Of a stretch of DNA of 64,000 bases, positions 7,524 to 61,000 are shown piece by piece. The DNA comes from Cycas panzhihuaensis (lineage: Eukaryota > Plantae > Cycadophyta), in contig CM041465.1 in the NCBI GenBank assembly GCA_023213395.1, positions 42,167,741-42,231,740 on the forward strand, in the 5' to 3' direction. Position numbers and translations under genes: made by a program. Under the pieces are notes generated by a model that was not told the DNA's origin, ran no database searches, and saw only the letters and a list, made by a program, of their open reading frames with translations. Every line of letters starts with the position of its first letter. The first letter of the stretch is position 1.

Positions 7524-8125
7524 TTTAACTTGCCCCTTTACTCAAGGAATAGCAGCTCAAGCTTTGGTTATTTTGGCATCAATCCAATTCCATATTTCTA
7601 ATAATCATGAACTCTTATTAATGACAAAATTTATGTATATTCCTATAATAGACTTACAACATAATTATGTTTTTCTATAGTTTATCATGTTGATTACATT
7701 TGAGATCACCTCATTCATGCATCTCCAAATAGAAACTATCAATATCTTCATCCTTCACAAGGCACTCAATAATCAAATTCAAGATGTTTTAGCTTTAGTC
7801 TATCTCGAGTCAAAATCCACATTTACCACCCTTTCTTAATCAATTAAGTTTAATTGGTGTTTAATATTTGTTTAGTTACATGACTTAGCATTTAGAGGTT
7901 ATTTTTTTAGGGGGGAATAAGAATTCAATATGAATTAGTCAAATCATATAAAGGTTATGTGACTGAGATCCAACTCTTATTAAATCACATAATATTACCT
8001 TTTACAACCTATAAACAAATATATTATATCATCATTTGTAATTGCATATATATAATTATGATAAGGCAAGTATACATTAATATGGTTTATTTTTTATCAT
8101 GAATATCATACATCAAATGAGTATT

Positions 8126-13743: not shown

Positions 13744-14021
13744 TACTATACATCAAATGAATATTTCATAATGACCATTACCTTTTATTTGCCCATTTTG
13801 CGAACATGTATAATGCTAATTCTAGTGTTTATGTGATCTTTTCTTAATATTAATATATTTGAGTTGTATGTTATACTTTGTTCTAGTTTATACCCTCTAA
13901 AGATCAATGATTTGTCACTAAAATTATATCATCTATATATATTTGAGCTTAATCATGATTATCGATAAAAATATTTCCTTTTCTTTAATTATTCAGTCTT
14001 AGCAATTACCTACTAAATGAG

Positions 14022-14107
14022 TAAATCACCCTTTACTACTACTTGTATTAATCACCCTTATTACCACTCATATTAGTCGCCCTTGCTCCAACTCATATTA
14101 ATTGCCC
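14022..14107. repeat. Short degenerate tandem repeat (~26 bp, ~3.5 copies)
   Basis: Recurring AATCACCCTT...ACTCATATTA-like units. Confidence 0.5.
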
Positions 14108-14233
14108 AGATAAGAACTTCTCTTTAACCTTGTTTAGCACTTCATTAGATGACATCAAATTCATTGTTTACGTACCAAGTTCTTTTTTTATATAGAGTCA
14201 ACAAAGTCTAAAGATCTTGTAGCTATAGTAATT

Positions 14234-14282
14234 TGTGTGTGTGTGTGTGTGTGTATGTGTGTTTATATATATATATATATAT
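14234..14282. repeat. Compound (TG)n(TA)n microsatellite
   Basis: Directly visible. Confidence 0.95.
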
Positions 14283-31000: not shown

Positions 31001-32186
31001 GACTGAAGAGGTCTATCTGGAACAACCTCTTGGATATATTTCTGTTGGCAATGAACATCTTGTCTGTCGCCTTAAGAAGGCCTTGTACGGTCTCAAACAG
31101 GCGCCACGTGCTTGGTATTCAATGATCGATGACTACTTTTTGCAGCACAGTTTTCATCGATCCATATCAGATTCAAACCTGTATATCAAGGTTCAAAACC
31201 AGTACATCACAATAGTAGTTTTTTATGTTGATGACTTAATTATCACAGGCAATGATGTAAATCTGATTGAGCGTCTCCAAAGGGACTTGAAAATAAGTTT
31301 TGAGATGACAGATCTCGATCTTCTTCACTATTTTCTTAGCATGGAAATGTGGCAGCAGCCAGGTCACATCTTTATTTCTCAAGCCAAGTACACATGGAAC
31401 ATTTTGCAGCATTTCATAATGGAAGACTGCAAACTTTCACCAACGCCCATGGAGACAGGTACAAAATTGTCGATGAATGAAGAAGGAAAACTTGTTGATT
31501 CCACCCTTTTTAGGCAACTAGTGGGTAGTCTTATCTACTTGACTAACACTAGACCTGATATTTCATATGCAGTTGGAATATGTTCCAAATATATGATCAC
31601 CTAATCGACACTGGAATGCTACAAAACGCATCCTCAGATACCTTAAAGGTACTTTGCAGTATGGACTTCAGTACACACGCAACGAAAACTTCACACTAGA
31701 AGGTTTCTCAGATTCAGATTGGATTGGTTGCCAAGATAGCCGGAAATCCACCTCAGGGTATTGTTTCAACCTTGGGTCAGCCATTGTTTCATGGAATTGC
31801 AAAAAGCAACCAAATGTTACGCTTTCCTCCACTGAAGCAGAATACAAAGCTGTCGGTACGTAGCATGTGAGGCTATTTGGCTCAGACGGATTCTTGAAGA
31901 GCTTGGACTTGAGCAAACACTCCCAACATCGTTGTATTGTGACAATCAGAGTGTTATCAAAATTGCCAAGAATCCTGTATTTCACGCTCGCACCAAACAT
32001 ATTGAGGTTCATCACCATTTCATCAGAGAACATGTGCAGCAAGGTGAGATTGACCTCATCTACAAGCCGACCGATCATCAACTAGCTGACATCTTCACCA
32101 AGCCACTTGGGAAAGAGAAGTTCGAGCATTTCAAAAGCGGCCTCAGCATTCGACTTAATACTGTATCCATTCATGGGAGATGTTAG
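28037..32186 (+). pseudogene. Disrupted copia gag-pol polyprotein of the 22090-32779 element
   Basis: Gag KLTGAENYLTWK, zinc knuckle CHYCGKVGHIQPDC, protease (NSGASHHM), integrase (LWHERLGH, DNGGEY), RT (QMDVKSAFL, YVDD), RNase H (SDSDW, ADIFTK); several stops and frameshifts. Confidence 0.95.
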
Positions 32187-38879: not shown

Positions 38880-41800
38880 ACTCGCAGCCATGGCTCTGTG
38901 AACCCACCATAAAGCATTTACATGCACATTGCCCGCAGTGCGCAACTGCAGTCTAGTGGCCACCCTCATGTGAATACCATTAAGAGCACCCTCTGCAATG
39001 CATCAACTCTGCGGGTGGGCATCACCCACAATGACAACATGAAAATGATGACCAACTCTCATTTTTGGACAGCAGATGACAACACATAGCAGTGATCTTC
39101 CTCCGGATCGGTTATCCACTATGGAGTCATCCGTGAATGCAAAGACTCATCCTGGAAGAACTGGCCATGTGCATAACCAGGAAAGGTCATCAACACAGGT
39201 CCTCATTGGGTAACCAGTTACCAATTCTCCTTCAACTTGGCCACCTACCAACCTAAGAGTGCCATCTAGGACTTACTACCCACATTAAGGTCAGTTTTCC
39301 TGGGACTTTTAGTCACACGGGAATGGGGAGCTGAGAGAGGGATGGGAACCTTTGTACGATAGGGTGGCCATCCTTCATCATTTCGTATAGTGTTCATTCA
39401 AGCCTTTGGTGTGATAGGACCTGCTTGTCATACCACATTTGGTGTGGAGTAGCTTTTTCAATTACCCCCCTTGGGGGAGCTGTTATGACCTAGTAGATAA
39501 CTAGCATCCATTTGAAGATTTTGTGGATAATCAAAGGGAAAAAGATCTTAGCAACAACCTCTATTTGTGTGATAGCAATGGCCCCCAAGACTTACAACAA
39601 TGCGAGCCTAATTTATCTACAATTTCTTTGGATAAGCAAGTGGTTCATACTGCAATGTTAGAGGTGCATTACAGGACTCTCATTGCATGGATCAAAGACT
39701 CCACAGGTTGTGCTTAGACAATGCGTCAAGAACTCTCTTGAAGTTTTGGTTGAAAGGTGAGCTCAATCAAAATCCTGTCTAAGGGTGTCTACTCTTTTAT
39801 CTTTGAATCCCTTGAAGCCTTGAAGCAAGCACTCAAATGAGGCCCATGGATATGCCAATGTAACCTAGTAGCTTTTCACCACTCAGACCTTGATTTTTTT
39901 GTGAATAAAGCTGTAGCTTTCATATGCCCAATGTGGATTGAGTTTCCTGGACTCGGCCTCTACCTGTACATGTTTATCAAAGAGCTCACTAGTCCGTTAG
40001 GAGAGTTTGCAACCCTAAAGCCTCGTAGAGAATTTTGTCCAAGGCCAAACGTTTGAGTCTATGTTAGGGTTGATTTATCCAAAGATCTACTAGAATACAT
40101 CCAATTTTAGTATAGTGATGAACCTCTCAAGCAAAGGGTTGTTTTTCTCAATGCACCTAATGCATGCTTTAGGTGCCACTCAAGGGATCATAAAATTAAG
40201 GATTGCCCATTAGTCTTAGTTAAATTTGAGCAAGCCAACCTTGAGAAAGAGGCTAACCCCTCCCCCATTATCAAACTTGAAAGGAAGTGTATTGAGGTTC
40301 ACAACAAAAAATCCATTGCCCAAGGTGCTAAGCCCAAACCTACTCAAGGAAGAAGCAAAACTCTTGTTAAAACCATGAACAAACAGCCAACTGCTCCTAA
40401 AAAACCTAAAGCCCTAGATAAAGAAGCAAAGAAACCAACTGACGAATCACCCAAGTACCATGACCCTCCCCAGATAATTCCAAAATTTGTGTCAAACATT
40501 GTTTTGACTAGGTTATAGAAGGGGAAGGTTCAAGTTTAACAGCCTCAAGAACCTTCCATCAAAGACTATTTTGAGTATGTAAGCAACAGACATAAGCAGG
40601 ATGTGAACAGGTTCTAAGTGTTAGCCTCTATCTTGGAAGAAAAGGGTAGGGGTATGGACATAAAAAGTGATCATGTTGAGTATCCTTAGCTGGAATATTA
40701 TGGGGATTATTGGCATATGTAGGAGGGCTACGGTCATAAGAATGGGTCGTATGTTCCCTTAGTTGGATATTATGTGCTTGCAAGAGGTCAAATTTGCCAA
40801 TTTGAACCTCAAATTTGCCTTGTCTTATATTTGGTCTAGTTGTTTGCAATATTCTACCTCTCATTTGAAAACAAGAGGTGGCACCTCCTTTTTTGTTAAA
40901 CCCCGGACTAGGGAATAAGATTGTTCAATTTGTATTCGGCCTTGGGAATAGGTATTTTTTCATTATGATTAGGGTTGACAATCTTGTCTTTAGGGATTTC
41001 CAATGTTTATGCTCTAAATAGTCTAGCAGAGAGGGAAGTGCATTGGTCTTGGTTTAGTTCCAACATCCATGAAGCTTCCTGGGGTTTGTGTGGCAACTTT
41101 AACATGGTGGAATCCCAAGAGGACAATGTGGGGGGGAGATCCTTTAGGTGGAATCATGAGGAATGTCATATATGGCAAGGTTTAAAGAGCAAGTTGACAC
41201 TACATGACCCCAATGCATGGAGAGAGAAATTAGGTTCAAGACCCATAGTTTACGTGGTCCAATATAAGGGCTATGCATGATAGAATCTTGAAAAGGCTTG
41301 ATAAGGTCATGATTTCTAACAATTGTCAATTCCAAATAATGCCAAAGGATGGAAGGCCAATCAAAGTCGTTAGCGAGATCGTCTTGTTAGACCATTACCC
41401 TAAGCATTTTGTCATTTCCTGGTGGGATGGAAAAGCGCCTGGCACTAAATCACCTTTTAAGCTTAATACTTCGCACCTCTCCTCCCTAGTTTGCTTCAAC
41501 AACATCAAACAAGTGGGCTTTGCCCCCCTTTCCTAGAGGTCCAATGGGATGGATCACATGGTGGGAACAAGCCATAAGCCTAGTTTCATCCTTCCTTCGA
41601 GGGTATAGGAAGCAAGTAGCTCTTATTAGGAGGAACACTAAGAGAGAATGTATTAGGAAGTTGGTTGCAAGTAGATGCCTGCTAGACTCCAATCTCTTTG
41701 ATGAAGACCACCTTGCTTCTCTTGTTCAAGAGGTTACGTTAGCAAAACTTGGAAGAGCTACAAGTGCTCATGTTAGAGCATGTCTCTATTGGATTAAGCA

Positions 41801-42174
41801 AAGGGATCATTGCTCTAAATTCTTCTTCCAAACCCCAAGGAATAAGCAGGCAAGGGAAGACATAATAGCTCTAAAAACTCCCTAGGGTAGGCCAACCAAA
41901 CAGGAAGAGATTGTTGAGAAGTTTCAAACACATTACCCTCAAGTGTTCTAGGCACAAGCCCCCTCTATGGAGGTTGAAAATACTATGGAAGAGTGTACAT
42001 AGTTGGCCCCTCTTGGAAGGATGATTATGACACCCTTTTCAAGCATGAGAAGTTGAAGGAAGTCCTTCTCAATATGGCCAATGAGAAGACTCCAACAGTA
42101 GATGGTCTTCCTTGTGAATTTTCCAAAGCTGCCTAAGAATTCACGAGTCTTGTACTGTTAAGGATGTATTAGGA
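38880..42174 (+). mobile_element. Intronic L1 LINE, 5' part (ORF1, APE endonuclease, start of RT)
   Basis: ORF1 GPW..MWIEFPGL and CFRCHSRDHKIKDC (~40165); ORF2 ILSWNI (~40683), GNFN, RLDK, DHYP, DGLPCEF. 5' boundary approximate. Confidence 0.88.
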
Positions 42175-44009
42175 TGACAAGTGTGGGGTTTTTCACAAGT
42201 GTAGTGAACCTTGAATTCAACATTGGTTCCGTTGCTTGTGTCCACCAAGGAGGGACTAGGGCCAGGAGTTTCATAAGGGGAAAATGTTTAAAGGACAAAG
42301 GAACTTGACTATCATTATGATGGCAAGTTGCACCTAAGCCTCCAATAACCAAGAAACCTTCCAATGACACCTAAGAGGCCTTCGAAGGTAGGAGAACCAC
42401 AAAAGGATACTTCACCTAAGGGGAAAGAAACGAGAAAACAAAGGCCATTATGATGGTCAAAGGAATCAAAATTAAGAAGGGCAAGAAGATTGAGTCTACA
42501 TAATAACAAAACTAAGGGATAGTCCATTGAAGAATCTAAGGCAAGTGGAGCCCAAACACCTCAAGAACAAGGAGAGAAAAATAATGGCAAACAAATGGTA
42601 CTAACACCTGCTCCAATCAAGTATGACCTTTTAAGCCCGGAAAAGGAGGAAAACCCAAGAGGAGATGTGGAACAAAACGACACCCTAGGGAAGAATATAC
42701 AAGTGTGGATGATACCTCGAAGGACCTAAGTGATAACGAGAAGGTGGTGGAGGAAGGTCCCTCAGCATACTAGGAGAATAAATTAACAAGGCAACTATTT
42801 GAGGATTCATCGGATAGGGGGTTTGAACAATCATATTTAGTGGTCACACCATTGACGGTACAAGTGCCAAGAGTACCGAAACCAATATATTTAAAAACAC
42901 CATTTAAGAATCCTCCATTTGGAAGAGATTGTGCTGCACCAAGCACCCCAAATACGCCACCTAAAGTGAAGGGTGGAGAAAACGAAGTAGAATCCTTTGA
43001 AGAGACAAAAAGAGAAGGGCCACCACTCAAAAGGACACCAGTGCAATCGCCAAAGATGAGCGATTTAAGGGATTTCAGGAAACTTATCTTCAACGACACC
43101 TTGGATGCAGCAGAGCACGTCTACCTATTTTAGAATCTGATTGATGTGAATAAAATTACAGACGAGAATGAAATAAAGGCAAGATTTGCTTGCACATTAC
43201 GGGGAGTACCATTGACATGGTACAAAGAGTTGGATAAAACAAAAACATAGCCGAATATAAAGAAATCATTTGAGGAAAGATTTCAGAAATTTCGAAGTAA
43301 CAAAGTTGTGGAGGTTGCCCTAAGAGAAATAAAGCAGAGGCATGGCGAATCAGTGTTAACCTACATCAGTCGCATGAAAATAATTGTTGTCAACATGATT
43401 AATGAGACGATTACAGACCATAGCATGAAGAACTATTTCGTCAGAGAGTTAAATGAGAAATTGACGTCTATGATGCATGCGCATCCCCTGAAGTCATTTA
43501 AAAATGCTCAAGATTTGCCATTGGACTTTGAAGCGGAGATGGATGCCCAAGTCGGAGGGCATGATCCCCTGTTACTAAGGTTACAAGAGGAGATAAGAGA
43601 AATGAAACAATACCAACATAATCAACCCCTTTGCCAAGTGGGAATCTCAGAAGAAGAGTCGAAGATCAAAGCTCTAAAGAAAGAAGTGGCAAGACTCAAG
43701 ATGAGAAATAACAAAGAGGAGGAAGAAGTGAAGAAAAGAAAGGACTGGGGATTTAAAATCGAGAAATGGTGTCATATTTGCCAGGAAAGTTCGCACACAA
43801 CCAAAGAATGTGAAATCAATCCAAAAATTAATGCAATGCACCAAAATGATAGATGATGTCATATAAGTGACATGGATAGTCACAATACAAGGGATTGTTT
43901 CTATAACCCTAGGAGAAGAGCTTATAGAGGACGAGGTCGGGGAAGAGGGAGCAACCCACCTCGGAATGTATATACAACAAAAAGTATGTAGGAACCTTCA
44001 AAGAAAAAT

Positions 44010-47000
44010 CATGAAAAGTTCTTTCAAGATTTTGACTCTGACGTTCGTGGTGTTGTACACATGGCTGACAAATCATCTCGACCAGTCGAAGGAGTTGGAG
44101 CTGTTTGCCTAAAACTCCCAGGCCTTCCAGATTTTACACTTGTTGATGTTTTATATATTCTCGCCTGCGAGAATCTGCTCTCCCTGTCCACCCTTGTCTC
44201 TCGTGGATTTGATCTGAGTGTAACTGCAAACAATCAAATTCTCTGTCATTCACCCTCCTTCAAATGCTGTGGTCATGACCGGAATTCTTAATGGCAAACT
44301 TTTTCGCCTAACTGGCTCACCATCCTCTGAAGCCAACTATGTTGATGATGACTCTACTTTTACCACAACCCTAACTTCTCAAAAGTTGTCCCAAGCGGCC
44401 CTATGGCATGCTCGTATAGGCCATATCAAAATTGATCGTTTAAGAGAACTACAAGCCACTCTTCCTGGTTTACCTAGGCTCTCCTCTAAGCCCTTCAAAT
44501 GCGAAGCATGTATTATTGCCAAATCTCAAAGACAACCCTTTCCTCGTAGTCAATGGAAATCTAGTCAACCTTTGCAGCTTGTACACTTAGATATATGCAG
44601 TCCTATGCCCATCCCTTCTCTCAAACAAAAGTGGTACTATATTACTTTCATTGATGATATTACCAAGAAAGTATGGTTTGCTTTTTTTGCAAAGAAAGAT
44701 GAAGCTTTTTCTATGTTTCAAGCTTTCAAGGCTCGTGTGGAAAATGAATCTGGATTCAAGATCAAAATACTCAGGACTGACAATGGTGGCGAGTACACAT
44801 CCAATGAGTTTGAATCGTACCTACGTCAACATGGAATCAAACATCAGACCACTGTTGCAGGTACACCCCAACAAAATGGAGTTGCCGAGCGCATGAACAG
44901 GACCATCATGAACATGGCTCGTGCTATGCTGGTATATAAGAATCTCCCTGTCTATTTTTAGGCTGAGGCTATCTGGACTGCTGTGTATTGCATCAACACT
45001 GTTAGTCCCTCCAAGCTCGGCCCCTCTCCACATGAAATGTGGTATGGACAAACCCCCTCTATCTCCCACTTCAAAATTTTTTGCTCTACTTGTTATACTC
45101 ATATTCTAGAGGAACATAGAAATAAACTCCAAGATACAGCCATCAAAGGCATGTTTGTCGAATACCCTATGGACAAAAAGGGATACAAGGTTTTCATACC
45201 TTCACAGTGCAAAATTATCATCACTAGAGATGTTATCTTTGCACAGACTGAAGATCAATTACTCAGACTTGACTCCAAGACGCCTTCATACCGATTTAAT
45301 AATGCTACTGAATTTGATGTCCAGATTCCAAAATTTAGGGGAGGGAGATGCTCAACAGTTGCTCAAAATCTTGGAATTTGACAATAGAGCCTCAGAGGAT
45401 ACAAGTTGTGACTCCCAGCCAATGTGTACACATCCAACACCATTATTTGTGAACAGCCAAGTTGACAAAGGCAAAGCCATAGCAGAAGGATCATCTTCCC
45501 CAACATCTGTGACTAGCCCATCTTCTCCAGCATCGTCAACTTCCTCTGTGCCAAACATTTCACATGATTCTTTTCAGGATCAAAACGAAGTCCAAGAGGC
45601 TGTGGAAATGAAAACCTCATTCCCAACTTGAGGTTTTTGTGAAGCCTACCAGCTACACAAGGACATGCGGCCAGATGAGGTAGGCAAAATTGGCACTAGA
45701 AGTGCCCATAGAGCAAGGATGCATGAATCACTTTCCGTTGAGCTTGAACCAGCAACTGCACCTTGCTCTTAATGAAGAGACCCTAACGTACCAAGAAGTT
45801 GTAAAGCATGCAGCTTGGAGAAATGTCATGAACGATGAGTACCAATCTCTTATCAAGAACGATACATGGGAGCTTGTTGATCTACCACTTGGAAGAAAGG
45901 TAGTTCAAAATAAATGGGTGTTCAAAAACAAGTACAGATCAGATGGCACCCTAGAAAAATACAAGGCAAGGTTTGTAGCAAAAGGATTCACGCAAAGGGA
46001 AGGCATCGACTACACTAAAATCTTTGCTCCTACAACCAAATGGCCTACAATCAGAACTCTTATAGCCTTGGCTGCTCAACAGGGTTGGAAAATCCACCAT
46101 CTTGATGTTAAGACCACATTTCTCGATGGGGACCTTAAAGAAGAAATTTACATGGCTCAGCCAAAAGGATACGAGATTGTCGGTCAGGAGCATAAGGTTT
46201 GCAGGCTCAAAAAGTCCTTGTACGGCCTAAAGCAAGCCCCTCGTGCTTGGTTTACCAAGTTGTCTGAAAGAATGAGGCAACTTGGATATGAGGTTTGTGA
46301 CTATCAAGATATTGATGCAACATTATTCATCAAGCGCCAAAATGATAAAGTCACCTACCTCTTACTCTTTATGGATGATATGCTAATAACGGGGAATAGT
46401 GAACAGGTAATCAGCCAGCTGAAGAAGGACCTTGCTAAAACTTTTGAATTGTCTGACCTCGGGTTGATGAAATATTACTTGGGAATTGAAGTAACTCAAA
46501 AGAATGGCAAAATCTTTCTCTCCCAAGAAAAAATATATCAACGATCTCCTGACAAAGTTTCAATTGGAAGGTGCTCGACCAATGGATACACCTATGGAGC
46601 CTAATATTAAACTCTCAGTTGATGGTGACATTAGGGAGGCAGACACAACACTCTACAAGCAACTTGTAGGTAGTCTCATCTATACTACCAACACAAGGCC
46701 AGATATTACATACTCTATCGGCATTCTTGCAAGATTCATGACAAATCCTAAGCAAAATCATTGGCAAGCTACAATACGAGTGTTGAGGTACCTAAAGACG
46801 ACCTGCAAATATGGTCTATTGTATGAACCCAATGCAGAATTTAAACTTTATGCATACACAGACTCAGACTTTGCCGGAGATAAAGACACATGAAGATCTA
46901 CATCTGGGTACGTAACATTTCTTGGAACAGCATCAACATCAGGGAGATCAAGACGACAGAAGATAGTTGCAGACTCAACCGCCGAAGCTGAGTATATTAC

Positions 47001-47864
47001 TGCTTCTCAGACAAGCAAGGAGGTGATATGGCTTAGAAAATTGTTGAATACATTAAATGCCACCCAAACAAGTTCTACTAGCTTACATGTAAATAATCAA
47101 TCTACAATCCAGATGGCTAAGAATCCTGTATTTCATGATCGTTGTTACACACTTGGGTGGTCTTCACTAACACCTCGGGGTTTTGGTGTAACGGTTTGTT
47201 ACAAGTGGTATCAGAGCCAAGGTCACGGGTTCGAGTCTTGGAGGGGGCGACCTTGGAGGGGACGACCTCGGTAGAACGCCGGCATAGTAGTGTTCGTCCG
47301 GGGCCCGATGGGGCGCGAAATTACCGAGAGTGGGTCACCAAGAGTGGGTCGCCGAGACGTCGATGCCCTGTGGGGGAGGTATTGTTACACGCTTGGGTGG
47401 TCTTCACTAACACCTCGGGGTTTTGGTGTAACGGTTTGTTACAATCGTACCAAACATATAAGTACGAAAGTCCATAGGATTAGAGAACTAGTTCATGATG
47501 GCACAATTCAACTGGAGTACTGCCCCACAGCAGATCAAGTGGCCGATATCTTCACCAAACCACTGAAGAGGGTGAAGTTTGAACAATTCCGAAAGCAACT
47601 AGACCTTAGAGCCTCCATCTCCGACTGATTGAAGGAGATGACAATAGGACCATCATACTTTGTCTCATTCGTAAAAACCCCTTGTGGGCGCGGAAGGACA
47701 AGAGTAAGTCTCTGCTCTATCCCATTCGTGAAAACCCCTTGTGGGCGCAAAAGGATAAGGGTTGTATCATTTTGGAAAATCGGAACCGTGAAAACCCGAA
47801 AGGGCATGGGGGATGACCAAATGGTATATAGAGACTCAGTAGATTTCAGCTACAAAATTCATTG
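44010..47864 (+). mobile_element. 5'-truncated Ty1/copia pol (end of protease, integrase, RT, RNase H), PPT and truncated 3' LTR (47639-47864)
   Basis: ORFs 44269-44961 (LWHARIGH, DNGGEY), 45690-46604 (RT), 46504-46893 and 47290-47628 (ADIFTK); GAAGGAGA PPT then TG at 47639. Confidence 0.93.
47143..47443 (+). mobile_element. Micro-TRIM / SMART-like 301-bp LTR element
   Basis: 61-bp LTRs 47143-47203 and 47383-47443 (60/61 identical), TSD ATCGT, PBS TGGTATCAGAGCC 47206-47218, PPT GGGGGAGG 47372-47379; it interrupts the copia RNase H motif PVFHDR|TKHI. Confidence 0.97.
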
Positions 47865-47906
47865 TACTTGTTGATCAATGTACTGTTGTGTGTAATCTAT
47901 GATGAT

Positions 47907-49290
47907 ATTCCAAGATTTTGAGCAACTGTTGAGCATCTCGCCCCCCCCCCCCCCCCCTAAATTTTGGAATCTCGACATCAAATTCAGTAGCATCATTAAA
48001 TCAGTATGAAGGCATCTTGGAATCAAGTCTGAGTAATCGATATTCAGTCTCCGCAAATATAGCATCTCTAGTGATGATAATTTTGCACTGTGAAGGTATG
48101 AAAACCTTGTATCCCTTTTTGTGCATAGGGTATCCAACAAACATGCCTTTGATGGCTCTATCTTGGAGCTTATTTCTATGTTCCTCCAGAATATGAGTAT
48201 AACAAGTAAAGCAAAAAATTTTGAAGTGAGAGATAGAGGGGGTTTGTCCATACCACATTTCATGTGGAGAGGGGCCGAGCTTGGAGGGACTAACAGTGTT
48301 GATGCAATACATAGCAGTCCAGATAGCCTCAACCTAAAGATAGACAGGGACATTCTTATATACCAGCATAGCACGAGCCATGTTCATGATGGTCCTGTTC
48401 ATGCGCTCGGCAACTCCATTTTGCTGGGATGTACCTGCAACAGTGGTCTGATGTTTGATTCCATGTTGACGTAGGTATGATTCAAACTCATTGGATGTGT
48501 ACTCGCCACCATTGTCAGTCTTGAGTATTTTGATCTTGAATCTGGATTCATTTTCCACACGAGCCTTGAAAGCTTGAAACATAGAAAAAGCTTCATCTTT
48601 CTTTGCAAAAAAAGTAAACCATACTTTCTTGGTAATATTATCAATGAAAGTAATATAGTACCACTTCTGTTTGAGAGAAGGGATGGGCATAGGACTGCAT
48701 ATATCTGGGTGTACAAGCTACAAAGGTTGACTAGATTTCCATTGACTACGAGGAAAGGGTTGTCTTTGAGATTTGGCAATAATACATGCTTCGCATTTGA
48801 AGGGCTTAGAGGAGAGCCTAGGCAAACCAGGAAGAGTGGCTTGTAGTTCTCTTAAACGATCAATTTTGATATGGCCTATACGAGCATGCCATAGGGTCGC
48901 TTGGGACAACTTTTGAGAAGTTAGGGTTGTGGTAAAAGCAGAGTCATCATCAACATAGTTGGCTTCAGAGGATGGTGAGCCAGTTAGGTGAAAAAGTTTG
49001 CCATTAAGAATTCCGGTCATAACCACAGCATTTGAAGGAGGGTGAATGACACAGAGAATTTGATTGTTTGCAGTTACACTCAGATCAAATCCACAAGAGA
49101 CAAGGGTGGACAGGGAGAGCAGATTCTGCTTCAGAGCAAGAATATATAAAACATCAACAAGTGTAAAATCTGGAAGGCCTGGGAGTTTCAAGCAAACAGT
49201 TCCAACTCCTTCGACTGGTTGAGATGATTTGTCAGCCATGTGTGCAACACCATGAATGTCAGAGTCAAAATCTTGAAAGAACTTTCCATG
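47907..49290 (-). repeat. Inverted copy of copia integrase region 44010-45377
   Basis: Minus-strand ORFs 48001-49239 reproduce plus-strand ORFs 44061-45381; 4 differences in a 120-nt sample. Confidence 0.97.
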
Positions 49291-49769
49291 CTAAGAAAAA
49301 TCAATTGGTTGTACCATAACGTGTTGCTTGAAGTCGAAGGCAAATCAAATTGCCCCGATGCTGAAACATGTTTCATTTCGATATGTAAACAAAAAATACA
49401 AAAAAAATAAAGAACAGAAAAAAAACAACAATAACTCATATCATACAAATAAGCAATATGACAAAAAAAAAAAGTGAAGGAAAAATTATAGTAGAAAAAA
49501 TCAAAATAAGAACATCATGGGGAAATGAATGAAGAAATAAATCGAAAAAAAAAAAGAAACTTATGCACCAAGAAATGAGGATTTATTAAAACCAAGTAAA
49601 AATAATTGAGGCTCGGAGCCAAGGCTATAGAGGCAGCCCTCGATGTAAAGCAGGGGAGGAAGAACACAAAATTTTGAAGAAAGAGACAACACCAAAATTT
49701 TAATTTTTTAAGCAAGGATGCTCAACCCTTTTTGTTGACCCAGGATAGATGTTGGCGAATAAAATGATC

Positions 49770-49992
49770 AACACGGTCAAAAACGGCCACAACGGCTCAA
49801 AAATGATCAGAAATGGGCCCAGAAATGGCCAAAACGGCTCAGAAATGACTAGAAATGGGCCTAAAACTACCAGAATGTTTCAGAAACAACCATAAACGAG
49901 CCCAGAACAGCCAAAACGGCTCATAAATGACCAAAAATGGGCCCAAAATAGCCCCAGAAACAACCAGAATAGGCCCAGAAACAATCCCAGGA
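49770..49992 (+). repeat. Degenerate ~10/40-bp tandem subrepeats in gypsy LTR U3
   Basis: Recurring CAGAAATGGGCC / CAAAACGGCT units. Confidence 0.75.
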
Positions 49993-50728
49993 TCACATAA
50001 CAAGGTGCGTACCTTTTCAGGTACGTTAGCAGACAGAACATACCAAAACGATATGCACGACTAGAACAGACTCAAATGCGCCCAAAATTGATGTGGCAGC
50101 AAGGATATATGTACGTACAGACAACGAATACATGGATTGGTAGTGTTAATCATGTGTTAAGTGAAAAGGCACATGTCATGAAAGGAATGGTTATGACCAT
50201 GGGTCATAACCATTCACCCAAGGGACACCAAAATGGGTATTCAATGGCACTTTTGAGGATCATTTCAATGGTGAGAGCCGAGTTATTCATTCCATGGCAT
50301 GTTCTCAAGGGTGAGAGCCGAGCATTCACTCCACATGGTAGTACATTAACCAGCAAGCCAAGATAGTGGTACGGACTAGAGTTGCAGCAGATGCATTCCC
50401 TTTTGGAACGTCTGTGATAGAATCTTGTATATGAGACTGGAATGTATATAGCATACATTCCAGAACTGAATGTATAAGACATTGCTTAATAAAGTGAAGA
50501 GTTACGTAGAATACTGTGCTTTATGCGTACCATGATGATCGCATAATGGATACTTGTTGATCAATGTACTGTTGTGTGTAATCTATGATGATATTGTGTT
50601 GAATTATGGGTGAATATGTGAAAACCTTAGGTATATGAAGTATGTTGATTATATCCTAAGCTAGATTACCAATGATCCCTTGACAAGTGTACCTACCTCA
50701 ATAGGGAGATCATGTAAAAGTCAACGGT

Positions 50729-53088
50729 AGCCTTCCAAATAGGTTAACTAGGTAGTAAGATCAACTAGGGTAGCATCAAGTTGATTCCCAAAGGCAAGGA
50801 CCCTGACCTAATCACAAACTAGAAGTCAATCACCCTATTGAATGACTCATGCAAAATCCTTAACAAAGCTCTAGCCAAGAGACTAAGGCACATACTACCT
50901 GAGATGGCCAGACCTAAATAGATTGGGTTTATCAAGGGCAGATATATCCTAGATAATGTTAATGCAATATGAGAAGATATGGAATGGGCTAGATCCTTTC
51001 TCTCAAGATGTGATGTTTATGAAGATTGAATTTGTTAAGGCATACGACAAGATGGAATTAGGGTTCTCATCCCTTGCATGTTAACAACCCTAGGATTTGG
51101 AGAGAGGTTCAAACCCCTTTTGTCAATGCCGTGATAAGAATCTCCATTAATGGAGCTTTGACTAAGCTTGTCAATTTTGATAGATCAATTAGGCAAGGGT
51201 GCCCATCGACCCCATCACTTTTTGTGCTCACATCTAATGCTTTAGATTAATTGTAACATAGGAAACTCAGTCAAGGGATTCTTAGAGTATCTCTCCACAA
51301 AGGCTGGAGGACAAACAATTAGTCAATGGCCACTTTGCTAATGACTCCTTCCTTACGGCCAAGTCTGAGCCAAGGTATGTAAAGGAGGCATTAAAGGCTT
51401 TAAACATTTGTGCTCAGCCTTGAGGTCCAAAATTCAATGAAAGAAAATAGCATGCTTCCCACAATCCCCCAAATATAAACCATAGTGGTTCCAAAAATTT
51501 GAAGGGGCATTGATCAAAATTGGGCATATTTTAAAGTTCCTTGGCATCCCCTTTGAGCTCATAGTCTCCTTAACAAAAATGTGGGAGTACGTGATTAATA
51601 AAGTAGAGAAGCAACTTAGAGGTTGGTCTTCCAAATGCTTGCCTTTGGCTAAAAGGCACCATATTTGCTCGAAGGTGTTGGTTGCCACTCATGCATATTA
51701 CTCCTCTTGCTATGTCCCACAAGATGCAACCTTTAACAAGCTTGTCAAATTGCTAGGATCTTTCTTGTGGGCCCCTGGCAAAGGCAAGAAAGGATTTAGC
51801 AAGGTAAGCTAGAAAGTATGTTGCAAACCTGAGGTTAATGGTGGCTTGGGAATTATTGACATCAAACAACAGAGTCAATCACTCTGTGCCAAATGGCTAG
51901 TCAAGGCGAGAGAAGGGGAAGAGCCATAAAAGTTTCTCATCAGTGACACCCTGTGTAAAGCCAACATCTAGCCAACTTAGTGGGACATTCTAGCTTTAGC
52001 TTAAACCCCCATATAGTGTTGGTTGCCCTTGTACCATTAGAGGTTGTGGGATCTCCCATCTTCAAGACCATTTGGAAATCATAAAAGACCATTTGGAAAT
52101 CATAAGAAAGATGCAAGAAATGGCTAGCTTGGTAAAGAGATGAGCCTCAAAAGGGGCTTTCTTTTATATAACACTCCATATGACAGTCGTTATTAATATA
52201 AAAGGATGGAAAGTGCCTTGAACATCATCAATGGTTTGAACCCTAGCCAATGAATAAGAAAGGGCTAACCACAATTAGGCAAATATTTGATAACGGACAC
52301 TAGAAGTAGTGGAGGATGCTCAGAAAGGAGTTCAATACCAAAGCCTCTGATAGATTCATCATTGAAGAGATACACAATTGTTGTTCTACTTCTCAAATCA
52401 TTAATCTAGACATTAATGACAATAAGAGGTGGCGGAAAGACCAAGCTTGGTATGTGCTTAAGTCAGTTGCCAAATCCGTCATGCCCCACGTGTATAAGTT
52501 GATGGCGACAAGGACTAGTATCTCTCATAGGGTGAACAAAATTTGGAATATTGTCAACAGTGATAGGGCATGGCACAAACGTTTCTAAAGACTTAGGGAA
52601 ACTCCCATGGAGCCCAAAACAATTTTTGTTTAGCTAGTCTCTAGTGCACAATAAACCGACTATCAAATCTAGGCTAGGCAAGCTTAGACAGATGGACATG
52701 ACCTACGTGATACATGGTCAAGTAAAACCCCTCTACACTTATTCCGGCAATGCTCATCAACCAAGTCAACTTGGGGTTGAGTCAAGGAATTTGCAAAACC
52801 CATCATCTTCAACACCATTTAATGGAACAATCCCATTCTAAAGGACAACAAACCCCTTTCTCAAACCTTTATTGTGCCTTGGGACATGTTACACATAGAA
52901 GTCACACATTACATTTGGAAGCATAAGAACTCTAATTTTCAATGGTAGATCTCCTTCATTGTTTTTCGTCTCTGATATGCTTCCCAATGTGCTGACTTAA
53001 TCCTCTCTACACATAAGTGCATAAGAACAAAAGGTATAATTGGAGTTGTCCCATCTCCTATAACTAATAGACCAGTAGAGCTCAACCA
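50729..53088 (+). mobile_element. Intronic L1 LINE, 3' part (RT, zf-RVT)
   Basis: Joins 42174 in frame (MY*E|AFQIG..IKLIPK); motifs GFIKGR, RQGCP, FANDS, FLGIP, GGLGI. Confidence 0.9.
52064..52105. repeat. Perfect 21-bp tandem duplication
   Basis: AAGACCATTTGGAAATCATAA x2. Confidence 0.9.
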
Positions 53089-55730
53089 TGTAAGAAAAGT
53101 GACTAATACTCCTTGATTCTATTGCATTGATAAGAATACACATAGATACAAAGAGAACCCCTCAGCATTAGTGACAAGTGTCAGACATGCAAAAAGATGG
53201 GAAAAGATACATGACCCTTAACTATTAGATGCTAAGCCTAAGTTTACAACTTAAGAATAAACATTATTCCTAACACCACCACCACCCCTCCAATGTTTAT
53301 TCTCCTGCTTTAACCCCAATTTGTTGTCTAAAATGTTGGAAGTTTTCTTTTCTAAGTGGTTTGGTGAAAACATCTACTAGTTCTTTTTCACTTACACAAT
53401 ATAATAACTCAATCTCCTTTTGTTGAACTTTTCTTTGATAAAGTGGTGATGGAGCTCAATATATTTGGTTCTAACTTGGAATACTAGACTTCTGGTCATT
53501 TTGATAGTGCTCTAATTGTCACAGAATATTGGAGTAGGAGAAGACTGTGTTTGATTTAGATCTTCCAACATTCTTTCGAGCCAAATGGCCTCACATAAAG
53601 TGCTTATAATAGCTTTATACTCGACTTTTGTTGAAGACAATACAATCATGGATTGTTTCTTGCTACACCAAGAGATGATACCTGTGCCTAGACTAAAGCA
53701 GTCAACAGTGGTGGATTTCCTATCATTGACTTCCCCAAGCTAGTCAAAATTTGTGTATCCAATTAGTTTGACATCTTGAGCTTTTGAATAGTGCAGCCCC
53801 AAATTTAGGGTGCCTTTGATATATCTTAGACTTCTCTTAGTTGCCTTCCAGTGAACTTCTTTGGGAATTGTCATGAATCAAGAAATTATCCCAACAACAT
53901 ATACAATATTAGACCTGGTGATTGTTAAATAAATTAATTAATTACCAATCTTCTACATAGAGTTTCATCCATTGGTTTGCCTCCTCCATCTGTAGTAATT
54001 TTGTTTCCTATCTCCATTGGTGTGACTGCAAGTCTACAATTTTCCATGTTGAAGTCCTCTAAAAGTCTTTTCGCAATCTTAGTTTGACACAAAAAAATAC
54101 CATTATGTTGTTGATCTACTTCAATTCCTAGATAGTAGTGCAAAAGTGCCATATCTGTCATTTCAAAGGATGTACACAAAGTTTGTTTTGGGTCTTGTAT
54201 CCTTTCTTTGTTATCACTAGTGATGAGAAGATCATCTACGTGCAAGACAATTATGGTGATCTTTTTTGTCTTGTGAACATAGAGACCAAAGTCTGCTTTA
54301 CATCTAGTGAACCCATTTTGTTTTAAATGTTGGTCAATCTTATCATACCAAGATCTTGGAGCTTGTCTGAGTCCATACAAGCCCTTTTTGAGTTTGAAAA
54401 CTAGATGCTCTTCTCTATTCTTTGGATAACCGAGAGGTTGTTCCATGTATACTTCTTCTAACAGATCGCCATTAAGGAATGCTCCCTTTACATCAACCTA
54501 GTATACTTTCCAACCATGTTGGGCTGCAATTGCTAGAATTGTTCTAACAATGATCATGTTTGCTATTAGAGCAAAGGTTTCTGTGTAATTTATTCCTTTA
54601 GTTTGAGTGAAGCCACGAGCAACCAAACGAGCTTTGTATTTTTCAATTGTTTCACCTGACTTCTCTTTTGTCTTAAAGACCCATTTGCACCCCACAATGG
54701 GTTTATCTATAGGAGGCGGAAACAAATCCTAAGTGTTGTTTCTATAAATTGTGTTGAATTCTTCATTCATAGCTCTGGTCCATTTTACATCTTTGTTGGC
54801 CTCTTCGTATGTTAGAGGTTCAACATTACATAAGAGAGAGTGTTGTAACTATATCCAAGTCCTTCCTCTTTTTAGATCTTTTGACATTTTGGATACCTAA
54901 ATCTTGCAATGTTTTAAGATACCATATGTTAGTCTTCTTATAGTATTTGATTTTGATTGATGTTATGGTTGTCATCTTGGACATATGTTGGAGCTTCGAA
55001 AGCTGCAAGCAAGCAAGTTGGATATTCTTGTGGTGTTATTTCTTCTTTATCTATCATCTATGGATGAGAGGACAAGAGTTCTTCAGTTATGATGAGGGAC
55101 AAAGACTCGTCAAATGTTACATTTTTGTTTATGATTATTTTGCTTGTTTTCAAATCCAAGCATCTATATGCTTTGGATTTCTCACCATACCCTACAAGAA
55201 TACATTTGATATTTTTGTTTTCCAACTCTTTTCTTTTCTCATCTAGTATATGAACATAGGTTGTATAGCCAAAGATTCATAATGTGAAATATCAAATTTT
55301 TGTTCTATCCATTCTTCTTCAAGAGTTAGTCCCTTTAAAGCTTTAGCAGGACTTCTATTGAGAAGATAAACAATTGTATGTACAACTTTTGCCCAGTATT
55401 TGTTTTTAGAAGAATTTTAGCCATTTCAATGATGGTCATATTCATTCATTCTACAACTCCATACAATTGAGGAGTGTATGCAGTAGTGAGTTGCATCATA
55501 GTTCCATGAACCTTGCAATATTTGTAGAAGTTGTTGGAGGTGAATCCTCCTCCAATGTCTGTACTCGAAACTTTGATCTTTTTATCACTTTCCCTTTCAA
55601 CCTATGCCTTGAATTCTTTAAAGATATTGAATGCTTCTAACTTGTTCTTGAGAAAGTAAACTCATAATTTCCTTGTACAATCATCTATAAATATCAAAGA
55701 GTATTTTTCCCCTCCTATGGAAACAGGCAT
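53089..55730 (-). mobile_element. Ty1/copia 3' portion (3' LTR 53089-53275, PPT, RNase H, RT, integrase), interrupted by a gypsy insertion
   Basis: ORFs 53934-54446 (LYGLRQAPRSWY, HVDD) and 54498-54725; LTR TGTAAG...CCTAACA followed by a C-rich PPT complement. Confidence 0.88.
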
Positions 55731-58014
55731 GCGTGTGCAAAAAATGGAATCAAGGCAGATTTTTGGGTTTGGGAAGTACGATCCAACATGGAAAGTTCAA
55801 CCAAAGGTACAATCAAGAGTTTGATCACAGCTAGAAGTGCAATCGACAACTTGATCACAGTTGAAGGTCTGATCAGAGGTTTGATCCAAGTTTTAATCGC
55901 AGTTCACGTACGACCTGAGATACAATCCGAACCCCAATCACAGTTTTGGTATGACCCAATGTATGACCAGAATGTCAATCGCAACTGTAAGTCTGATTAG
56001 TAGTGCGACCAATTATTTGAACATAGTTCAAGTGCAATTCGAAGTACAATCAACAACCTGATCGTAGTTCAAAGTGGGACCAAAGACTTGGAAAATCACT
56101 TGATTATATTTTCACATGTGATTAAATCAGTCAACAAAGAGTTAGTTGAAAGTTCGGCTATAACTGAATGTATTCTTCTTGTATAAGTAAAGATTGTATG
56201 TAAGACGTTGTATTCTGTTGCATAGGATTTCTATCTTTCTTATTGTAGTGGCTCATTGTCACACCTCTATAGCAACTTCCATATTGCATTGTTCGGGACT
56301 ACATCTAGTTGTGAGAGAACTAGACATAATGCCCTCTTGGAATAAAGAGTTTGTTTTGCATTCCTAGATTGATGTGTATATCATGATGTATGTGCTCACT
56401 TTATCTACATGAATGGTTAGAACGTTTGCCCAGTATCTGTTTAGAACATTTCTTACTTTCAAAAGGTCTTTAGCCATTTCAGTGATGGCCATATTCTTTC
56501 GTTCAACAACTCCATATGATTGAGGAGTGTATACATGAAAGACGAAATGGAGACAATATAGGAGCTAGAATCTATTGAGAAGCTGGAGAGGACATCGAAA
56601 TATGAAGGACAATACACTTAGATTAAAGAAACGGTGTAGTACAACATAAAAGATAATAGGGAGGAGTATTGCACGTCAACTCAACCTATCACAACATACA
56701 AGTATGAAGGAGAATTCCTCTCAACACTTCACCTACAAGAGACACTTACAGCAGCATAACTCTTACTCAAAATACTATATGCCAAAACATGATAATAGGG
56801 CTCCTTATAAAGGAGTATGGACGATCAAGATCTCAACACATGTCACTGATCAAAACTAAGAGCCAAATCTGATTAGGACTCTTCTATCTCCAAGGATAAG
56901 GATAGAGCCCACAAAAGTTGACTTCTCACAAGCACATGTGAGAAAAGTCACTACAAGACAAAAGACAATTTTATAATCCAACAAATGAACACTTTAGGAT
57001 AAAGGGCTTAAAGTGACAAAAATATTAATACACAAGGTCAAGACTTAATGCTTAGGAATGAAGGTTCTAACAATACAGTGGTGAGTTGCATCATGGTTCC
57101 ATGAACCTTGCAATATTTGTAGAAGTTGTTGGAGGTGAATCCTCCTCCATTGTTTTTACTCGAAACTTTGATCTTTTTATCACTTTCCTTTTCAACCTAT
57201 ACCTTGAATTCATTAAAGATATTGAATGCTTCTAACTTGTTCTTGAGAAAGTAAACTCATGATTTCCTTGTACAATCATCTATAAATGTCAATAAGTATC
57301 TTGCCCATCCTATGGAAATAGGCATGTGTGTGCAAAAAATGCAAGAACCTTTCTAGGTTTGGGAAGTACAATCCAACGTGTAAAGTTCAATCAAAAGTAC
57401 AATCCAAAGTTTGTTCACAACTAGAAGTGCAAAGAACGACTTGATCACAATTGAAGGTCTAATCAGAGGTACGATCCAAGCTCTGATCACAGTTCAGGTA
57501 CAACCTGATATACAATCTGAACCCCAATCGCAGTTTAGGTATGACCCAATGTATGACTAGAATGCCAATCACAACTGTAAGTTTGAATGGTAGTGTGACC
57601 AATTACTTGATCATAGTTCAAGTGCAATTTGAAGTATGATTAGAAACCTAATCGCAGTTCAAAGTGGGACCAAAGACTTAGAAAATCACTTGATTAGATT
57701 TTAACATGTGATTAAATCAGTCAGCAAAGAGTTAGTTGATAGTTCAGTTATAAACTGAATGTATGCTTCTTGTATAAGCAAAGATTGTATGTATGACATT
57801 GTTGTATTTCATTGTGTAGGATTTCTATCTTTCGTGTTGTAGCGGCTCATTATCGCATCTCTATAACAACTTCCATATTGTATTGTTCAAGACTGCATCT
57901 AGTTGTGAGAGAGCTAGACATAGTGCCCTCTTGGAATAAAGAGTTTGCTTTGCATTCCTAGATTGATGTGTATATCATGATGTATGTGCTCACTTTATCT
58001 ACATGAATGGTTAG
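55384..58014. repeat. Tandem duplication of ~1.04 kb spanning a copia integrase/gypsy LTR junction (units 55384-56420 and 56421-58014)
   Basis: Both units run from AAC.TTTGCCCAGTAT to CATGAATGGTTAG; unit 2 also carries a solo LTR. Confidence 0.9.
56536..57072 (-). mobile_element. Solo LTR of the same copia family as 22090-32779
   Basis: Reverse complement of the TGTTAGAACCTTCATTCC...CTTTCA LTR; perfect TSD ATACA (56531-56535, 57073-57077). Confidence 0.95.
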
Positions 58015-61000
58015 TAATTAGTATGCATGGGTAGCATGACACACATTGGTTTCGTTGCCCTATTGAACTTAAGGGAAGAAAGAACGTAAGATAAACATGG
58101 ACAAAGCTGACTGAACGAATGGTCCTTCTGCCATGCCACCAAGGATTATTTTGGAGAGAAAAACTAAGACATGCTAGGAGTGAAGCGAACATTAGGCAAA
58201 GGATAAGGTACAAGTAGGAGTAAGTAAACCTAGGTTCTCAATTACACCCAGAAGGCAAGTAAAGAGGCGACTACTTGTGGGATCAATAGAGGAGAGAAAG
58301 CTGACTCCAAAAGACAAGTCGAAGAAAGGAGACCAAGTTAAAGAGACAACAACTGAAACCCTTGTCTAGCAAGCGACAATCCAAACAAAAGAAGTAAATT
58401 AACAACGTGCAATGGAAGAGGATCCAATTAGTGATGGGAAGTTGCAATCAATACCTGCGAACAAAGAACCATTAGGAAAAATAAAATCATCAAGTGGTGA
58501 AAGTAATTCCATAGTGGTAAAATTATATAGTGCAACTAATGGAGGGCGGGACCATCACCTAGTGGAAATTAGAACTCCTTTTACCCACATTTTGAATCTC
58601 GTTTTTCATAAGATAAGTGAAAAAATTATAGGTTCAATTTTCTCAAGACCCTGTTCTCCATCAGCAGAAGGAAGTTTGGGACCAATGGGGAGTATTGTAG
58701 GGGTTAGTGGCACTTCGCCACTATTACGAAGTGGGACAAGCACACGAGGAGGTAGCTCGTTGCAAAGCACATCATTGCTTACAAATATGGGAGGAGGCAG
58801 CTCGTTGCAAAGCACGTCATTGCTTACAAATATGGGAGGAGGTGGTAATCAGGCATCATCTGGTGGTGCACCTAGAGGAACTGCATTAGGGGGAAAGGGA
58901 CCTAATATTATTAGTGGGGCATAACAAGTAACTCCCCATGTAATTGTCCAGAATGATGCAGCTTTCTCAAATCTACAGTTTGATGGTTCCCATGATCTGG
59001 GTGGTCATTTGGCACTATTTCTCAATGTTAAAAATAAAAAGATTTAGGATCTAGATGAAATTAAGCCGAGATTTTTTCAACATTAAGAGAAGCCGAAATT
59101 TCATTGTTCTAGTATGCCTCAACACAGAACTTAAGTTGGAATCAATTGCAAGTATGTTTCATGGACCGATTTCAAAAGCTCAGATATCCTGTGGCAATTT
59201 TCTAGGCATTAGAAGAAATCAAACAACTTCCAGGAGAGTCAATCAATTATTTCAATGGGCGAATGAGAATTATTATGAATAGAATAGATGTGTCCACTCC
59301 AATCAACCCAATGCTCATATTGAAGTATTTTGTTCAAGGGTTAACCCCTCAGTTGAGGGAAAAGGTAGCTTCACATCCAATGAATAATTATGAACAAGTA
59401 CGAGAATTGGCACTTAAATTCGAAAAATAAATGAAAATGACATATTTACAGTCGGTAACATAGTTGAGTCTAAATTTTCAATTGTACCTAGTTTTTGCCA
59501 AACACCCCAAATGGACATGAGTCTGCAAGAATCTTTGATGAACAATTAGTAGATGAGCTAGACTCCACAAATGGGCTTAAATCCAGAAATGGAAGCCTTG
59601 AAGTGGGAAGTAGAAACACTTAAACAACAAGCATCAATGTCATTGCCAATAGCAATGCAGTAGAATCAAGAGATTGAAAAGCTACAATCTAAACTAGCCT
59701 ACTTGCATCTAGAAAAGTCTAGAGAGAATGTATGGTGCCCCCTGACTTGCAATCAGCAAGGGCATTTAAGAAACAAACTTCAAGAAGTAGGGAAGTAGTG
59801 CGAGATTTATAGGAGAACCAACCATAACACATGGGAGTGTTTCTTTCAACAAGGCCCTAGAGGCCCAGAAGGAAAAGTTTGCAATGTGTTTTTCCAAAAA
59901 TCGATCAAGGAACAGGGAAGCAATATAAGGGAAAACAAAACCAATCAAAATACTTGTGCCAAAGATGGGGGCACTACAGATCAAAATGCCCATTGGAGAA
60001 AAAAGGAGGTGATTTTATTTGCAAAGAATGTAGGCCAATCGATCACGAGTGGGTTAGCTATTCAAAAAATGTTACAATTCAGGCGACCAATTTGATCACA
60101 AAAGTACTAGACAAAGAAAATCCCTCCTCCTTACAGACCCAAGGTGGAAAAGTGCCTATCCACACTGACAATAGGGAATTTTCTAAAGCATGTGGTAGAG
60201 AAACAAAGGCTCCAAAAAGTTGTGAAGATCTTGCAAGAAGATTTGAACAAAGTACAATAGGAGGAGACTCAACAAGACCAATGTTTTAGAGGTCAAATCT
60301 GTAAAAGAAGAACTTCTTCACAGGAATCTTCACAACAAAGATAAGGATTAAATCCATGGCAACAACTCCAATCAGTTCAAGAGTTGTTGATAGAGTTAGG
60401 GGTGACCATCCCAATTGCTATAGTGTTTAGATGGTGGGAAGCAAGTTATTTCCAACAAATTGTCTTTAGACCAGATTGAAAAACCAATGTTGAGGGCACT
60501 AAAAAATAATACGGTGGACCCACGAGTCCCAATAGTAATTCTAGGGACAACTCTATGTAAGACTATTGTGGATGAAGAATCGAATGTAAATGTTTTACCA
60601 AAGACCTCTTAGATAACTCTAGGAAGCCTAAAAGTGGTGGCCCCAAACTATTCCATCAGGCTAGTCAATCAGTTACAACTCAGGCCAATGGGGACTTTGA
60701 TGAATGTCCCTATCACAGTGGCAAGTATAACTGTCTTGATGGACTTTGCAATTGTTCGGATGCAAAGTCAGAAAAAGACCTATCTAGCATGCTTGGTAGG
60801 CCATGGTTCTTGACTACCAAGGCAACCTAGGATTAGGGAAGGTACATATTTATTTTGTCAGTAGAGGGAAAAACAGTTACCCTCCCTCTGTGTTCAGACA
60901 ATCCCCATATTAAAAAAAATAAAGATGTAGAAAAGACCTCTTCCACCACAACAAAGACAGAACCAACAATGAGTCTGTGTTCAGAAATAGCTTATCAAGC

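Follow-up and report, generated by a model that had tools for sequence, protein, structure and literature searches.

A rotated copia element with a single, divided LTR inside a LINE of Cycas panzhihuaensis, possibly captured without integrase

Integrase leaves a long terminal repeat (LTR) retrotransposon in the chromosome with two LTRs and a 5-bp target-site duplication (TSD). The one-LTR circles and open-circle intermediates of such elements are usually regarded as dead ends or transient steps, and it is chiefly experiments in yeast that have shown LTR elements inserting independently of integrase. Here we describe a rotated Ty1/copia unit at positions 42175-50728 of a 64,000-nt stretch of the Cycas panzhihuaensis genome (GCA_023213395.1, contig CM041465.1, forward strand, 42,167,741-42,231,740), the whole of which was analyzed and is referred to below as the window. 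The unit occupies a degraded long interspersed nuclear element (LINE), which is broken at 42174/42175 and resumes at 50729. Its capture as rotated one-LTR DNA by host end joining, independently of integrase, is plausible though unproven, and on the sequence evidence we regard the case for this mechanism as evenly balanced.

Plant Ty1/copia elements (Pseudoviridae) resemble the insert in the position of integrase before the RVT_2 domain, in their TG...CA LTRs, in a primer-binding site (PBS) lying one base past the LTR, and in their huge repetition. The insert differs from them in having a single LTR split over both ends, no 5-bp TSD, and an added foldback and patch of U5 sequence. According to one review, 1-LTR circles arise from a PBS-guided circular intermediate that is closed non-covalently (PMC12786077); such one-LTR or open circles, as presented there, resemble the insert in having only one LTR and in being discontinuous where U5 meets the PBS, and rotating the insert reproduces exactly that topology. 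They are extrachromosomal by-products or intermediates, however, whereas the present copy is chromosomal and appears linearised 38-48 nt inside U5 with a 10-nt overlap (PMC12786077). In yeast, end joining captures replication intermediates (cDNA) of Ty1 at double-strand breaks (PMC11372161), and Tf1 is capable of integrase-independent insertion (PMC11042837). Both systems resemble the present locus in dispensing with integrase and with a regular TSD, in their junction extras or microhomology, and in drawing on reverse transcription intermediates as donors (PMC11372161, PMC11042837). Yeast captures are mostly short fragments (PMC11372161), and Tf1 uses homology of the PBS or polypurine tract (PPT) and gives tandems (PMC11042837), whereas the plant LINE studied here contains a complete, rotated unit of 8.5 kb and shows no target homology. 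Finally, Sabot and Schulman (2007) described template switching that builds complex three-LTR elements in plants (PMC1950507). The likeness lies in aberrant template switching leading to non-canonical LTR architecture in plant genomes, and the difference in that the present insert has fewer than two LTRs and no TSD (PMC1950507). The principle of integrase-independent capture is already known; a literature search found no description of a comparable insertion, in which an LTR element is present whole and rotated.

The layout of the insert can be read directly at its junctions. The left end is formed by the last 48 nt of a copia LTR (42175-42222, plus strand), a U5 tail that begins with TGACAAGTGT and terminates in TTCAACA. 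One base (T) beyond its CA stands the predicted PBS, TGGTTCCGTTGC (42224-42235, plus strand), which was placed by the LTR-end layout, is the sole exact match to this motif in the window, and is, we presume, complementary to the 3' end of tRNA-Glu. A second copia in the window, with an LTR end at 58046, has the identical CA-T-TGGTTtCGTTGC arrangement and a copy of the PBS at 58047 with one mismatch, and 42175-42222 is thus a true LTR end lying beside a PBS. The sequence around that second end (57800-58060) closes with ...GCATGACACACA, followed by T and TGGTTTCGTTGC, a primer site of the identical type that differs by one transition. At the right of the insert lies an LTR head of 941 nt (49750-50690, plus strand), comprising U3, R and most of U5, which starts with TGTTGG and ends, at 50681-50690, with the same 10-mer that opens the insert; a filler of 38 bases (50691-50728, plus strand) then leads into the LINE.

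The insert therefore holds the equivalent of one LTR only, and neither the LTR nor its 48-nt tail recurs elsewhere in the window. Inside an otherwise continuous LINE, the order runs from LTR tail and PBS to PPT and LTR head. Two complete direct LTRs and a TSD of 4-6 bp, which characterize a canonical integrase insertion, are absent, and the flanks, TAGGA and AGCCT, have no bases in common. An earlier note on this DNA had described the permuted layout with its U5 tail, PBS, LTR head and 38-nt filler, the 10-mer shared by the two ends (42175 and 50681-50690), and the lack of a TSD, and all of this is borne out by the junctions. A rotated single-LTR unit placed in a LINE without target duplication is probably not the work of integrase, and converting an integrase product to this layout would take two deletions, each halting exactly at the LINE border.

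On indirect evidence, the 48-nt tail and the 941-nt head probably belong to one LTR. The opening 10-mer is found once more in the 979-nt right end, where ~0.001 occurrences would be expected, and the ends of the joined pieces read TGTTG...CAACA. In a folding test, for which 140 and 38 non-coding bases were joined in silico, 42185-42222 paired with 50597-50623 at -24.7 kcal/mol, against -16.4 +/- 3.0 for shuffles. The energy of this U5 stem was reached by 0.5% of the shuffles and by 1.2% of 1309 natural 38-mers from the window, and the filler falls short of it; the fold-back between the two end pieces that had been proposed earlier is accordingly real, lying beyond nearly all shuffles and natural 38-mers. 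The features expected of a Ty1/copia element, namely TG...CA LTR ends, a PBS after the LTR, and a purine tract, AGGATAGA, before TGTTGG at 49750, were all found. If the two pieces do form one LTR, family LTRs should run from ...CCCTTGACAAGTGT into GGGGTTTTTCAC...TTCAACA and, at 5' LTRs, onward into TTGGTTCCGTTGC. A 22-mer from the LTR had 0 matches in a metagenome collection, a scan of viral contigs gave 0, a public-collection scan with the LTR end and PBS returned one match, to an unrelated bacterial contig (L001), and a 70-aa open reading frame across the left junction had no candidate in the protein database.

Two further observations concern the LTR sequence. A third exact TGACAAGTGT lies at 53172-53181, near the approximate right limit of the LINE, in a context unlike an LTR, and is probably due to chance. 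A short LTR of 132 nt, starting from TGTTGAATT (50597), was set aside: no purine tract precedes it, and related copies diverge at 49755.

The insert is a Ty1/copia element by domain order, and not a gypsy element as the earlier note had it. Pfam matches on the plus strand place gag_pre-integrs and rve (44269-44961; rve E-value 9e-16) and SH3_retrovirus (44983-45381; 3e-24) ahead of RVT_2 (45690-46604; 1e-72), and the Ty3/gypsy order, with RVT_1 and RNase H upstream of integrase, is not found. The internal region (42236-47868, plus strand) comprises, by Pfam, leader, gag, protease, integrase, SH3-like domain and RVT_2, interrupted by many stops. An A-rich 3' untranslated stretch (49291-49749, plus strand) begins with CT and AAGAAAAATCA and ends in the short purine run that precedes the LTR. 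In a protein search with the reverse transcriptase, top identities of 52-57% were to gymnosperm copia fragments, the best from Pinus taeda, Taxus and Ginkgo, so the database searched contains no close relative. Further copia-like stretches at 29788-32132 and 54347-55691 (the latter on the minus strand) are 63-77% alike to the element studied here.

The start of the LTR head is supported by related contigs from four public runs (X1, X3, X5 and X7), which were compared with 45050-51000. These follow the window to TGTTGG (49750-49755) and then diverge (93 in X1 and 77 in X5), so that 49750 acts as an LTR start, as expected for a variable U3. Within the head, whose U3, R and U5 limits were drawn by eye, lie a 20-nt tandem array (49762-49984), a TATA-like box near 50446 and AATAAA at 50489. 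The array consists of 8.6 copies of ~20-nt units with 64% matches, plus a 21-nt doublet at the LTR start, and is nearly unique in the runs, with a depth of ~200 vs 5,000-15,000 over the remaining LTR. Contig depth is very high over 45050-47835, and the coding part (45050-49228) has an enormous number of copies in four or more organisms with different labels (X1, X3, X5, X7), its differences from the window being mainly C>T and G>A, the pattern that methylation of repeats would lead one to expect.

A search for the source of the 38-nt filler returned none, yielding only chance-level 9- to 13-mers in the window, the longest a 13-mer at 30290. Homology between the filler and 42185-42222, allowing for divergence, was rejected (score -7 vs -9.6 +/- 5.7 for shuffles). 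Also rejected was a reading of the 10-mer as a LINE-type target duplication, made by a LINE entering an LTR: the left LINE ends where the right begins, and no poly-A tail is present there. The filler could also be taken as the true LTR end of an ordinary integrase insertion that was later damaged, its left LTR deleted to 48 nt and its TSD lost or decayed. Family copies would then run from ...CCCTTGACAAGTGT into ACCTACCTCAATAGG, with the filler start ACCTACC; the shared 10-mer lies exactly 48 nt from the insert end on both sides, and contig depth stays high in the bin containing the filler, both of which agree with such a history. The LTRs of one insertion start identical, yet the two 38-nt tails are unrelated; the right end lacks a terminal CA; and the deletion would have to halt exactly at the LINE border, remove the duplicated bases and keep the LINE frame. 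We consider later damage of this sort very unlikely.

The host LINE lies on the plus strand on both sides of the insert. Its left part (40111-42174), assigned by weak Pfam matches and frame, runs from an ORF1 zinc knuckle through the endonuclease and a linker to just before the reverse transcriptase motif LIPK, and its right part (50729-53100), assigned by frame and a weak RVT_1 match and with an approximate right limit, carries the reverse transcriptase onwards. The Pfam matches, zf-CCHC at 40111-40515, Exo_endo_phos at 40763-40915 and profile positions 12-36 of RVT_1 at 50829-50903, are each below the cut-off (E 0.02-0.05). Collinear as they are, they support the view that one degraded LINE probably hosts the insert, and the motifs WIKQRDHCSKFFF and IKLIPK are readable in translation. 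The left LINE, in frame 2, terminates in ...DGLPCEFSKAA*EFTSLVLLRMY*, with GA remaining, and the right LINE, in frame 1 after one base A, continues AFQIG*LGSKIN*GSIKLIPKGKD...; GA and A complete the codon GAA, so that the reading resumes in frame. The 30 codons from the stop equivalent to W up to LIPK agree with the spacing in plant LINEs. No LINE homologue across the insertion site was found, a protein search with the LINE piece giving only short, non-spanning fragments. The earlier claim that the LINE rejoins in frame as TAGGA|AGCC stands as to the frame, its exact joint being placed by reading frame and motif spacing.

Both flanks bear on a possible assembly artefact, in which the junctions would stem from mis-joined repeats. 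The family is extremely repetitive and no junction-spanning read was seen, as such an error would have it. The flanks, however, belong to one LINE that continues in frame, the LINE flank is low-copy (contig depth 1-5, with single-copy depth in the related species of runs X1, X3, X5 and X7), and the arms of the foldback inside the insert are 3.9% apart, which no read chimera would produce. An artefact is therefore highly improbable.

This foldback makes the insert a composite, consisting of an inverted integrase copy, a 45-nt U5 patch and ~306 extra bases in addition to the rotated unit, and an account of it as a simple permuted element, as given earlier, leaves out the foldback and the U5 patch. 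The inverted copy (47907-49290, minus strand) repeats the element's own 44010-45377, covering the protease end and integrase, is ~95-96% alike, and shows Pol_BBD, gag_pre-integrs and rve in Pfam on the minus strand. Its divergence from the forward arm amounts to 53 substitutions in 1368 positions (3.9%), 44 of them transitions, plus 16 indel columns, which speaks for old biology and against a read or sequencing chimera. At the foldback turn lies an exact 45-nt copy of U5 (47865-47909, plus strand, from 50551-50595), whose first 4 nt, TACT, are common with internal sequence. The inner joints show microhomologies, TACT at 47865-47868 and ATT near 47907, and the 11-mer AAGAAAAATCA at 49293-49303 repeats 44001-44011, these being the outer flanks of the foldback. 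Most family copies part from the window copy directly after 47868, as seen from loose contig ends, and what follows 47868 or 49755 in those other copies is not found elsewhere in the window. The ~306 extra bases (47138-47448, plus strand) are bounded by 63-nt direct repeats (47142-47204 and 47382-47444, 98% alike) and are absent from most family copies: contig joints skip 47137-47444 (X1, X5, X7) or 47124-47445 (X3), and contig depth over the segment drops ~20-fold. As the inverted segment of 1.4 kb and the patch of U5 show, template switches had a share in forming the molecule too, whether they occurred in the particle or afterwards in the chromosome.

With arms of 1.37 kb that are 2.5 kb apart, the foldback (44001-49303) could give a hairpin RNA if transcribed. 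The inverted arm carries ~18 C at 47941-47958 where the forward arm has 7, an 11-base homopolymer expansion. A circle formed by autointegration was considered and rejected, as none of the inner joints (47864/47865, 47909/47910 and 49290/49291) coincides with an LTR terminus.

Three donors could account for a single-LTR unit in rotated order: a sealed circle with one LTR, a tandem array, or an open circle of reverse transcription. The sealed circle, opened in U5 and captured by repair, was the route put forward in the earlier note; its rotated, integrase-independent reading survives, with the sealed circle as one of several routes. In a unit of 8.5 kb, the two breaks fall 38 and 48 nt from the border between U5 and PBS, a proximity of ~1% for a random break, and this favours a nicked open-circle intermediate over a sealed circle with a randomly placed break. 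We accordingly take as the most likely source the open circle that reverse transcription forms once the second strand transfer has occurred. In this molecule the interruption of the minus strand lies exactly at the U5/PBS border, and plus-strand strong-stop DNA bridges it. Strand-displacement synthesis of ~48 nt into U5 would set the left end, trimming of the displaced end by ~38 nt would set the right end, and the difference between synthesis and trimming would leave the 10-nt terminal overlap. One-LTR copia DNA of this form, with U5 tail, PBS, genes, PPT and U3-R-U5 head, would then have been joined into a chromosome break inside the old LINE, end joining adding the 38-nt filler. End joining by the host in place of integrase would account both for the lack of a 5-bp duplication and for the presence of 38 extra bases at one junction. 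An equivalent picture would result if a sealed circle with one LTR were cut at sites staggered by 10 nt.

A tandem array or concatemer (LTR-internal-LTR-internal), chromosomal or extrachromosomal, might likewise have served as the template, one unit and 10 nt being placed in the break. It would yield the same rotated layout and the terminal overlap without any staggered cut, and plants are known to contain LTR elements in tandem arrays as well as complexes with three LTRs (PMC1950507, PMC12786077). A tandem donor gives no reason, however, for both ends to lie beside the PBS or for a length of nearly exactly one unit, and no tandem copy of the family was seen in the window, which makes it quite improbable.

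Several observations weigh against the capture of a one-LTR molecule. No intact family LTR was seen, and the continuity from 50690 to 42185 is unproven. The filler and the missing U5 tail are of equal length (38 nt), a coincidence under this model. Contig depth in the bin 50622-50820 equals that of the LTR bins, and among the rows listed there is no pile of loose ends at 50690, a hint that repeated sequence might run past this point. The exact rejoining of the LINE was placed solely by frame and motif spacing, and a few codons may have been lost or gained. Finally, depth over 49291-50690 is 50-100 times below that of the coding part, and another subfamily or molecule is possible; subfamily-specific non-coding ends are expected, but a different donor also fits.

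This drop in depth, which affects the LTR head and 49291-49749, would also agree with a break in the LINE filled by unrelated copia fragments, namely a 5'-truncated left part, a U5 scrap, the inverted integrase, and a 3' part with the LTR head. The rotated look would then be an accident of order and the shared 10-mer a matter of chance or microhomology. The insert is indeed a patchwork with short microhomologies (TACT, ATT) at its inner joints, and in yeast, breaks are known to receive insertions made of several pieces (PMC11372161). Against such an assembly of fragments, the outer ends are linked by the 10-mer (~1e-3), the U5 stem (~1%) and the TGTTG/CAACA ends, and both ends of the insert fall within one 48-nt stretch of U5. 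On balance, we regard unrelated fragments as unlikely.

This is a single old, decayed and internally rearranged locus, and it is suggestive only. That open-circle capture might be a recurrent, integrase-independent route of copia entry in this genome, leaving a recognisable class of rotated, TSD-less copies with breaks clustered near the PBS, is for now a doubtful extension. If the capture described here is true, one-LTR molecules can enter the plant germ line, and the position of the break points would tell which intermediate was captured. A genome-wide census of such copies in this repeat-rich genome would turn an anecdote into a measurable pathway.

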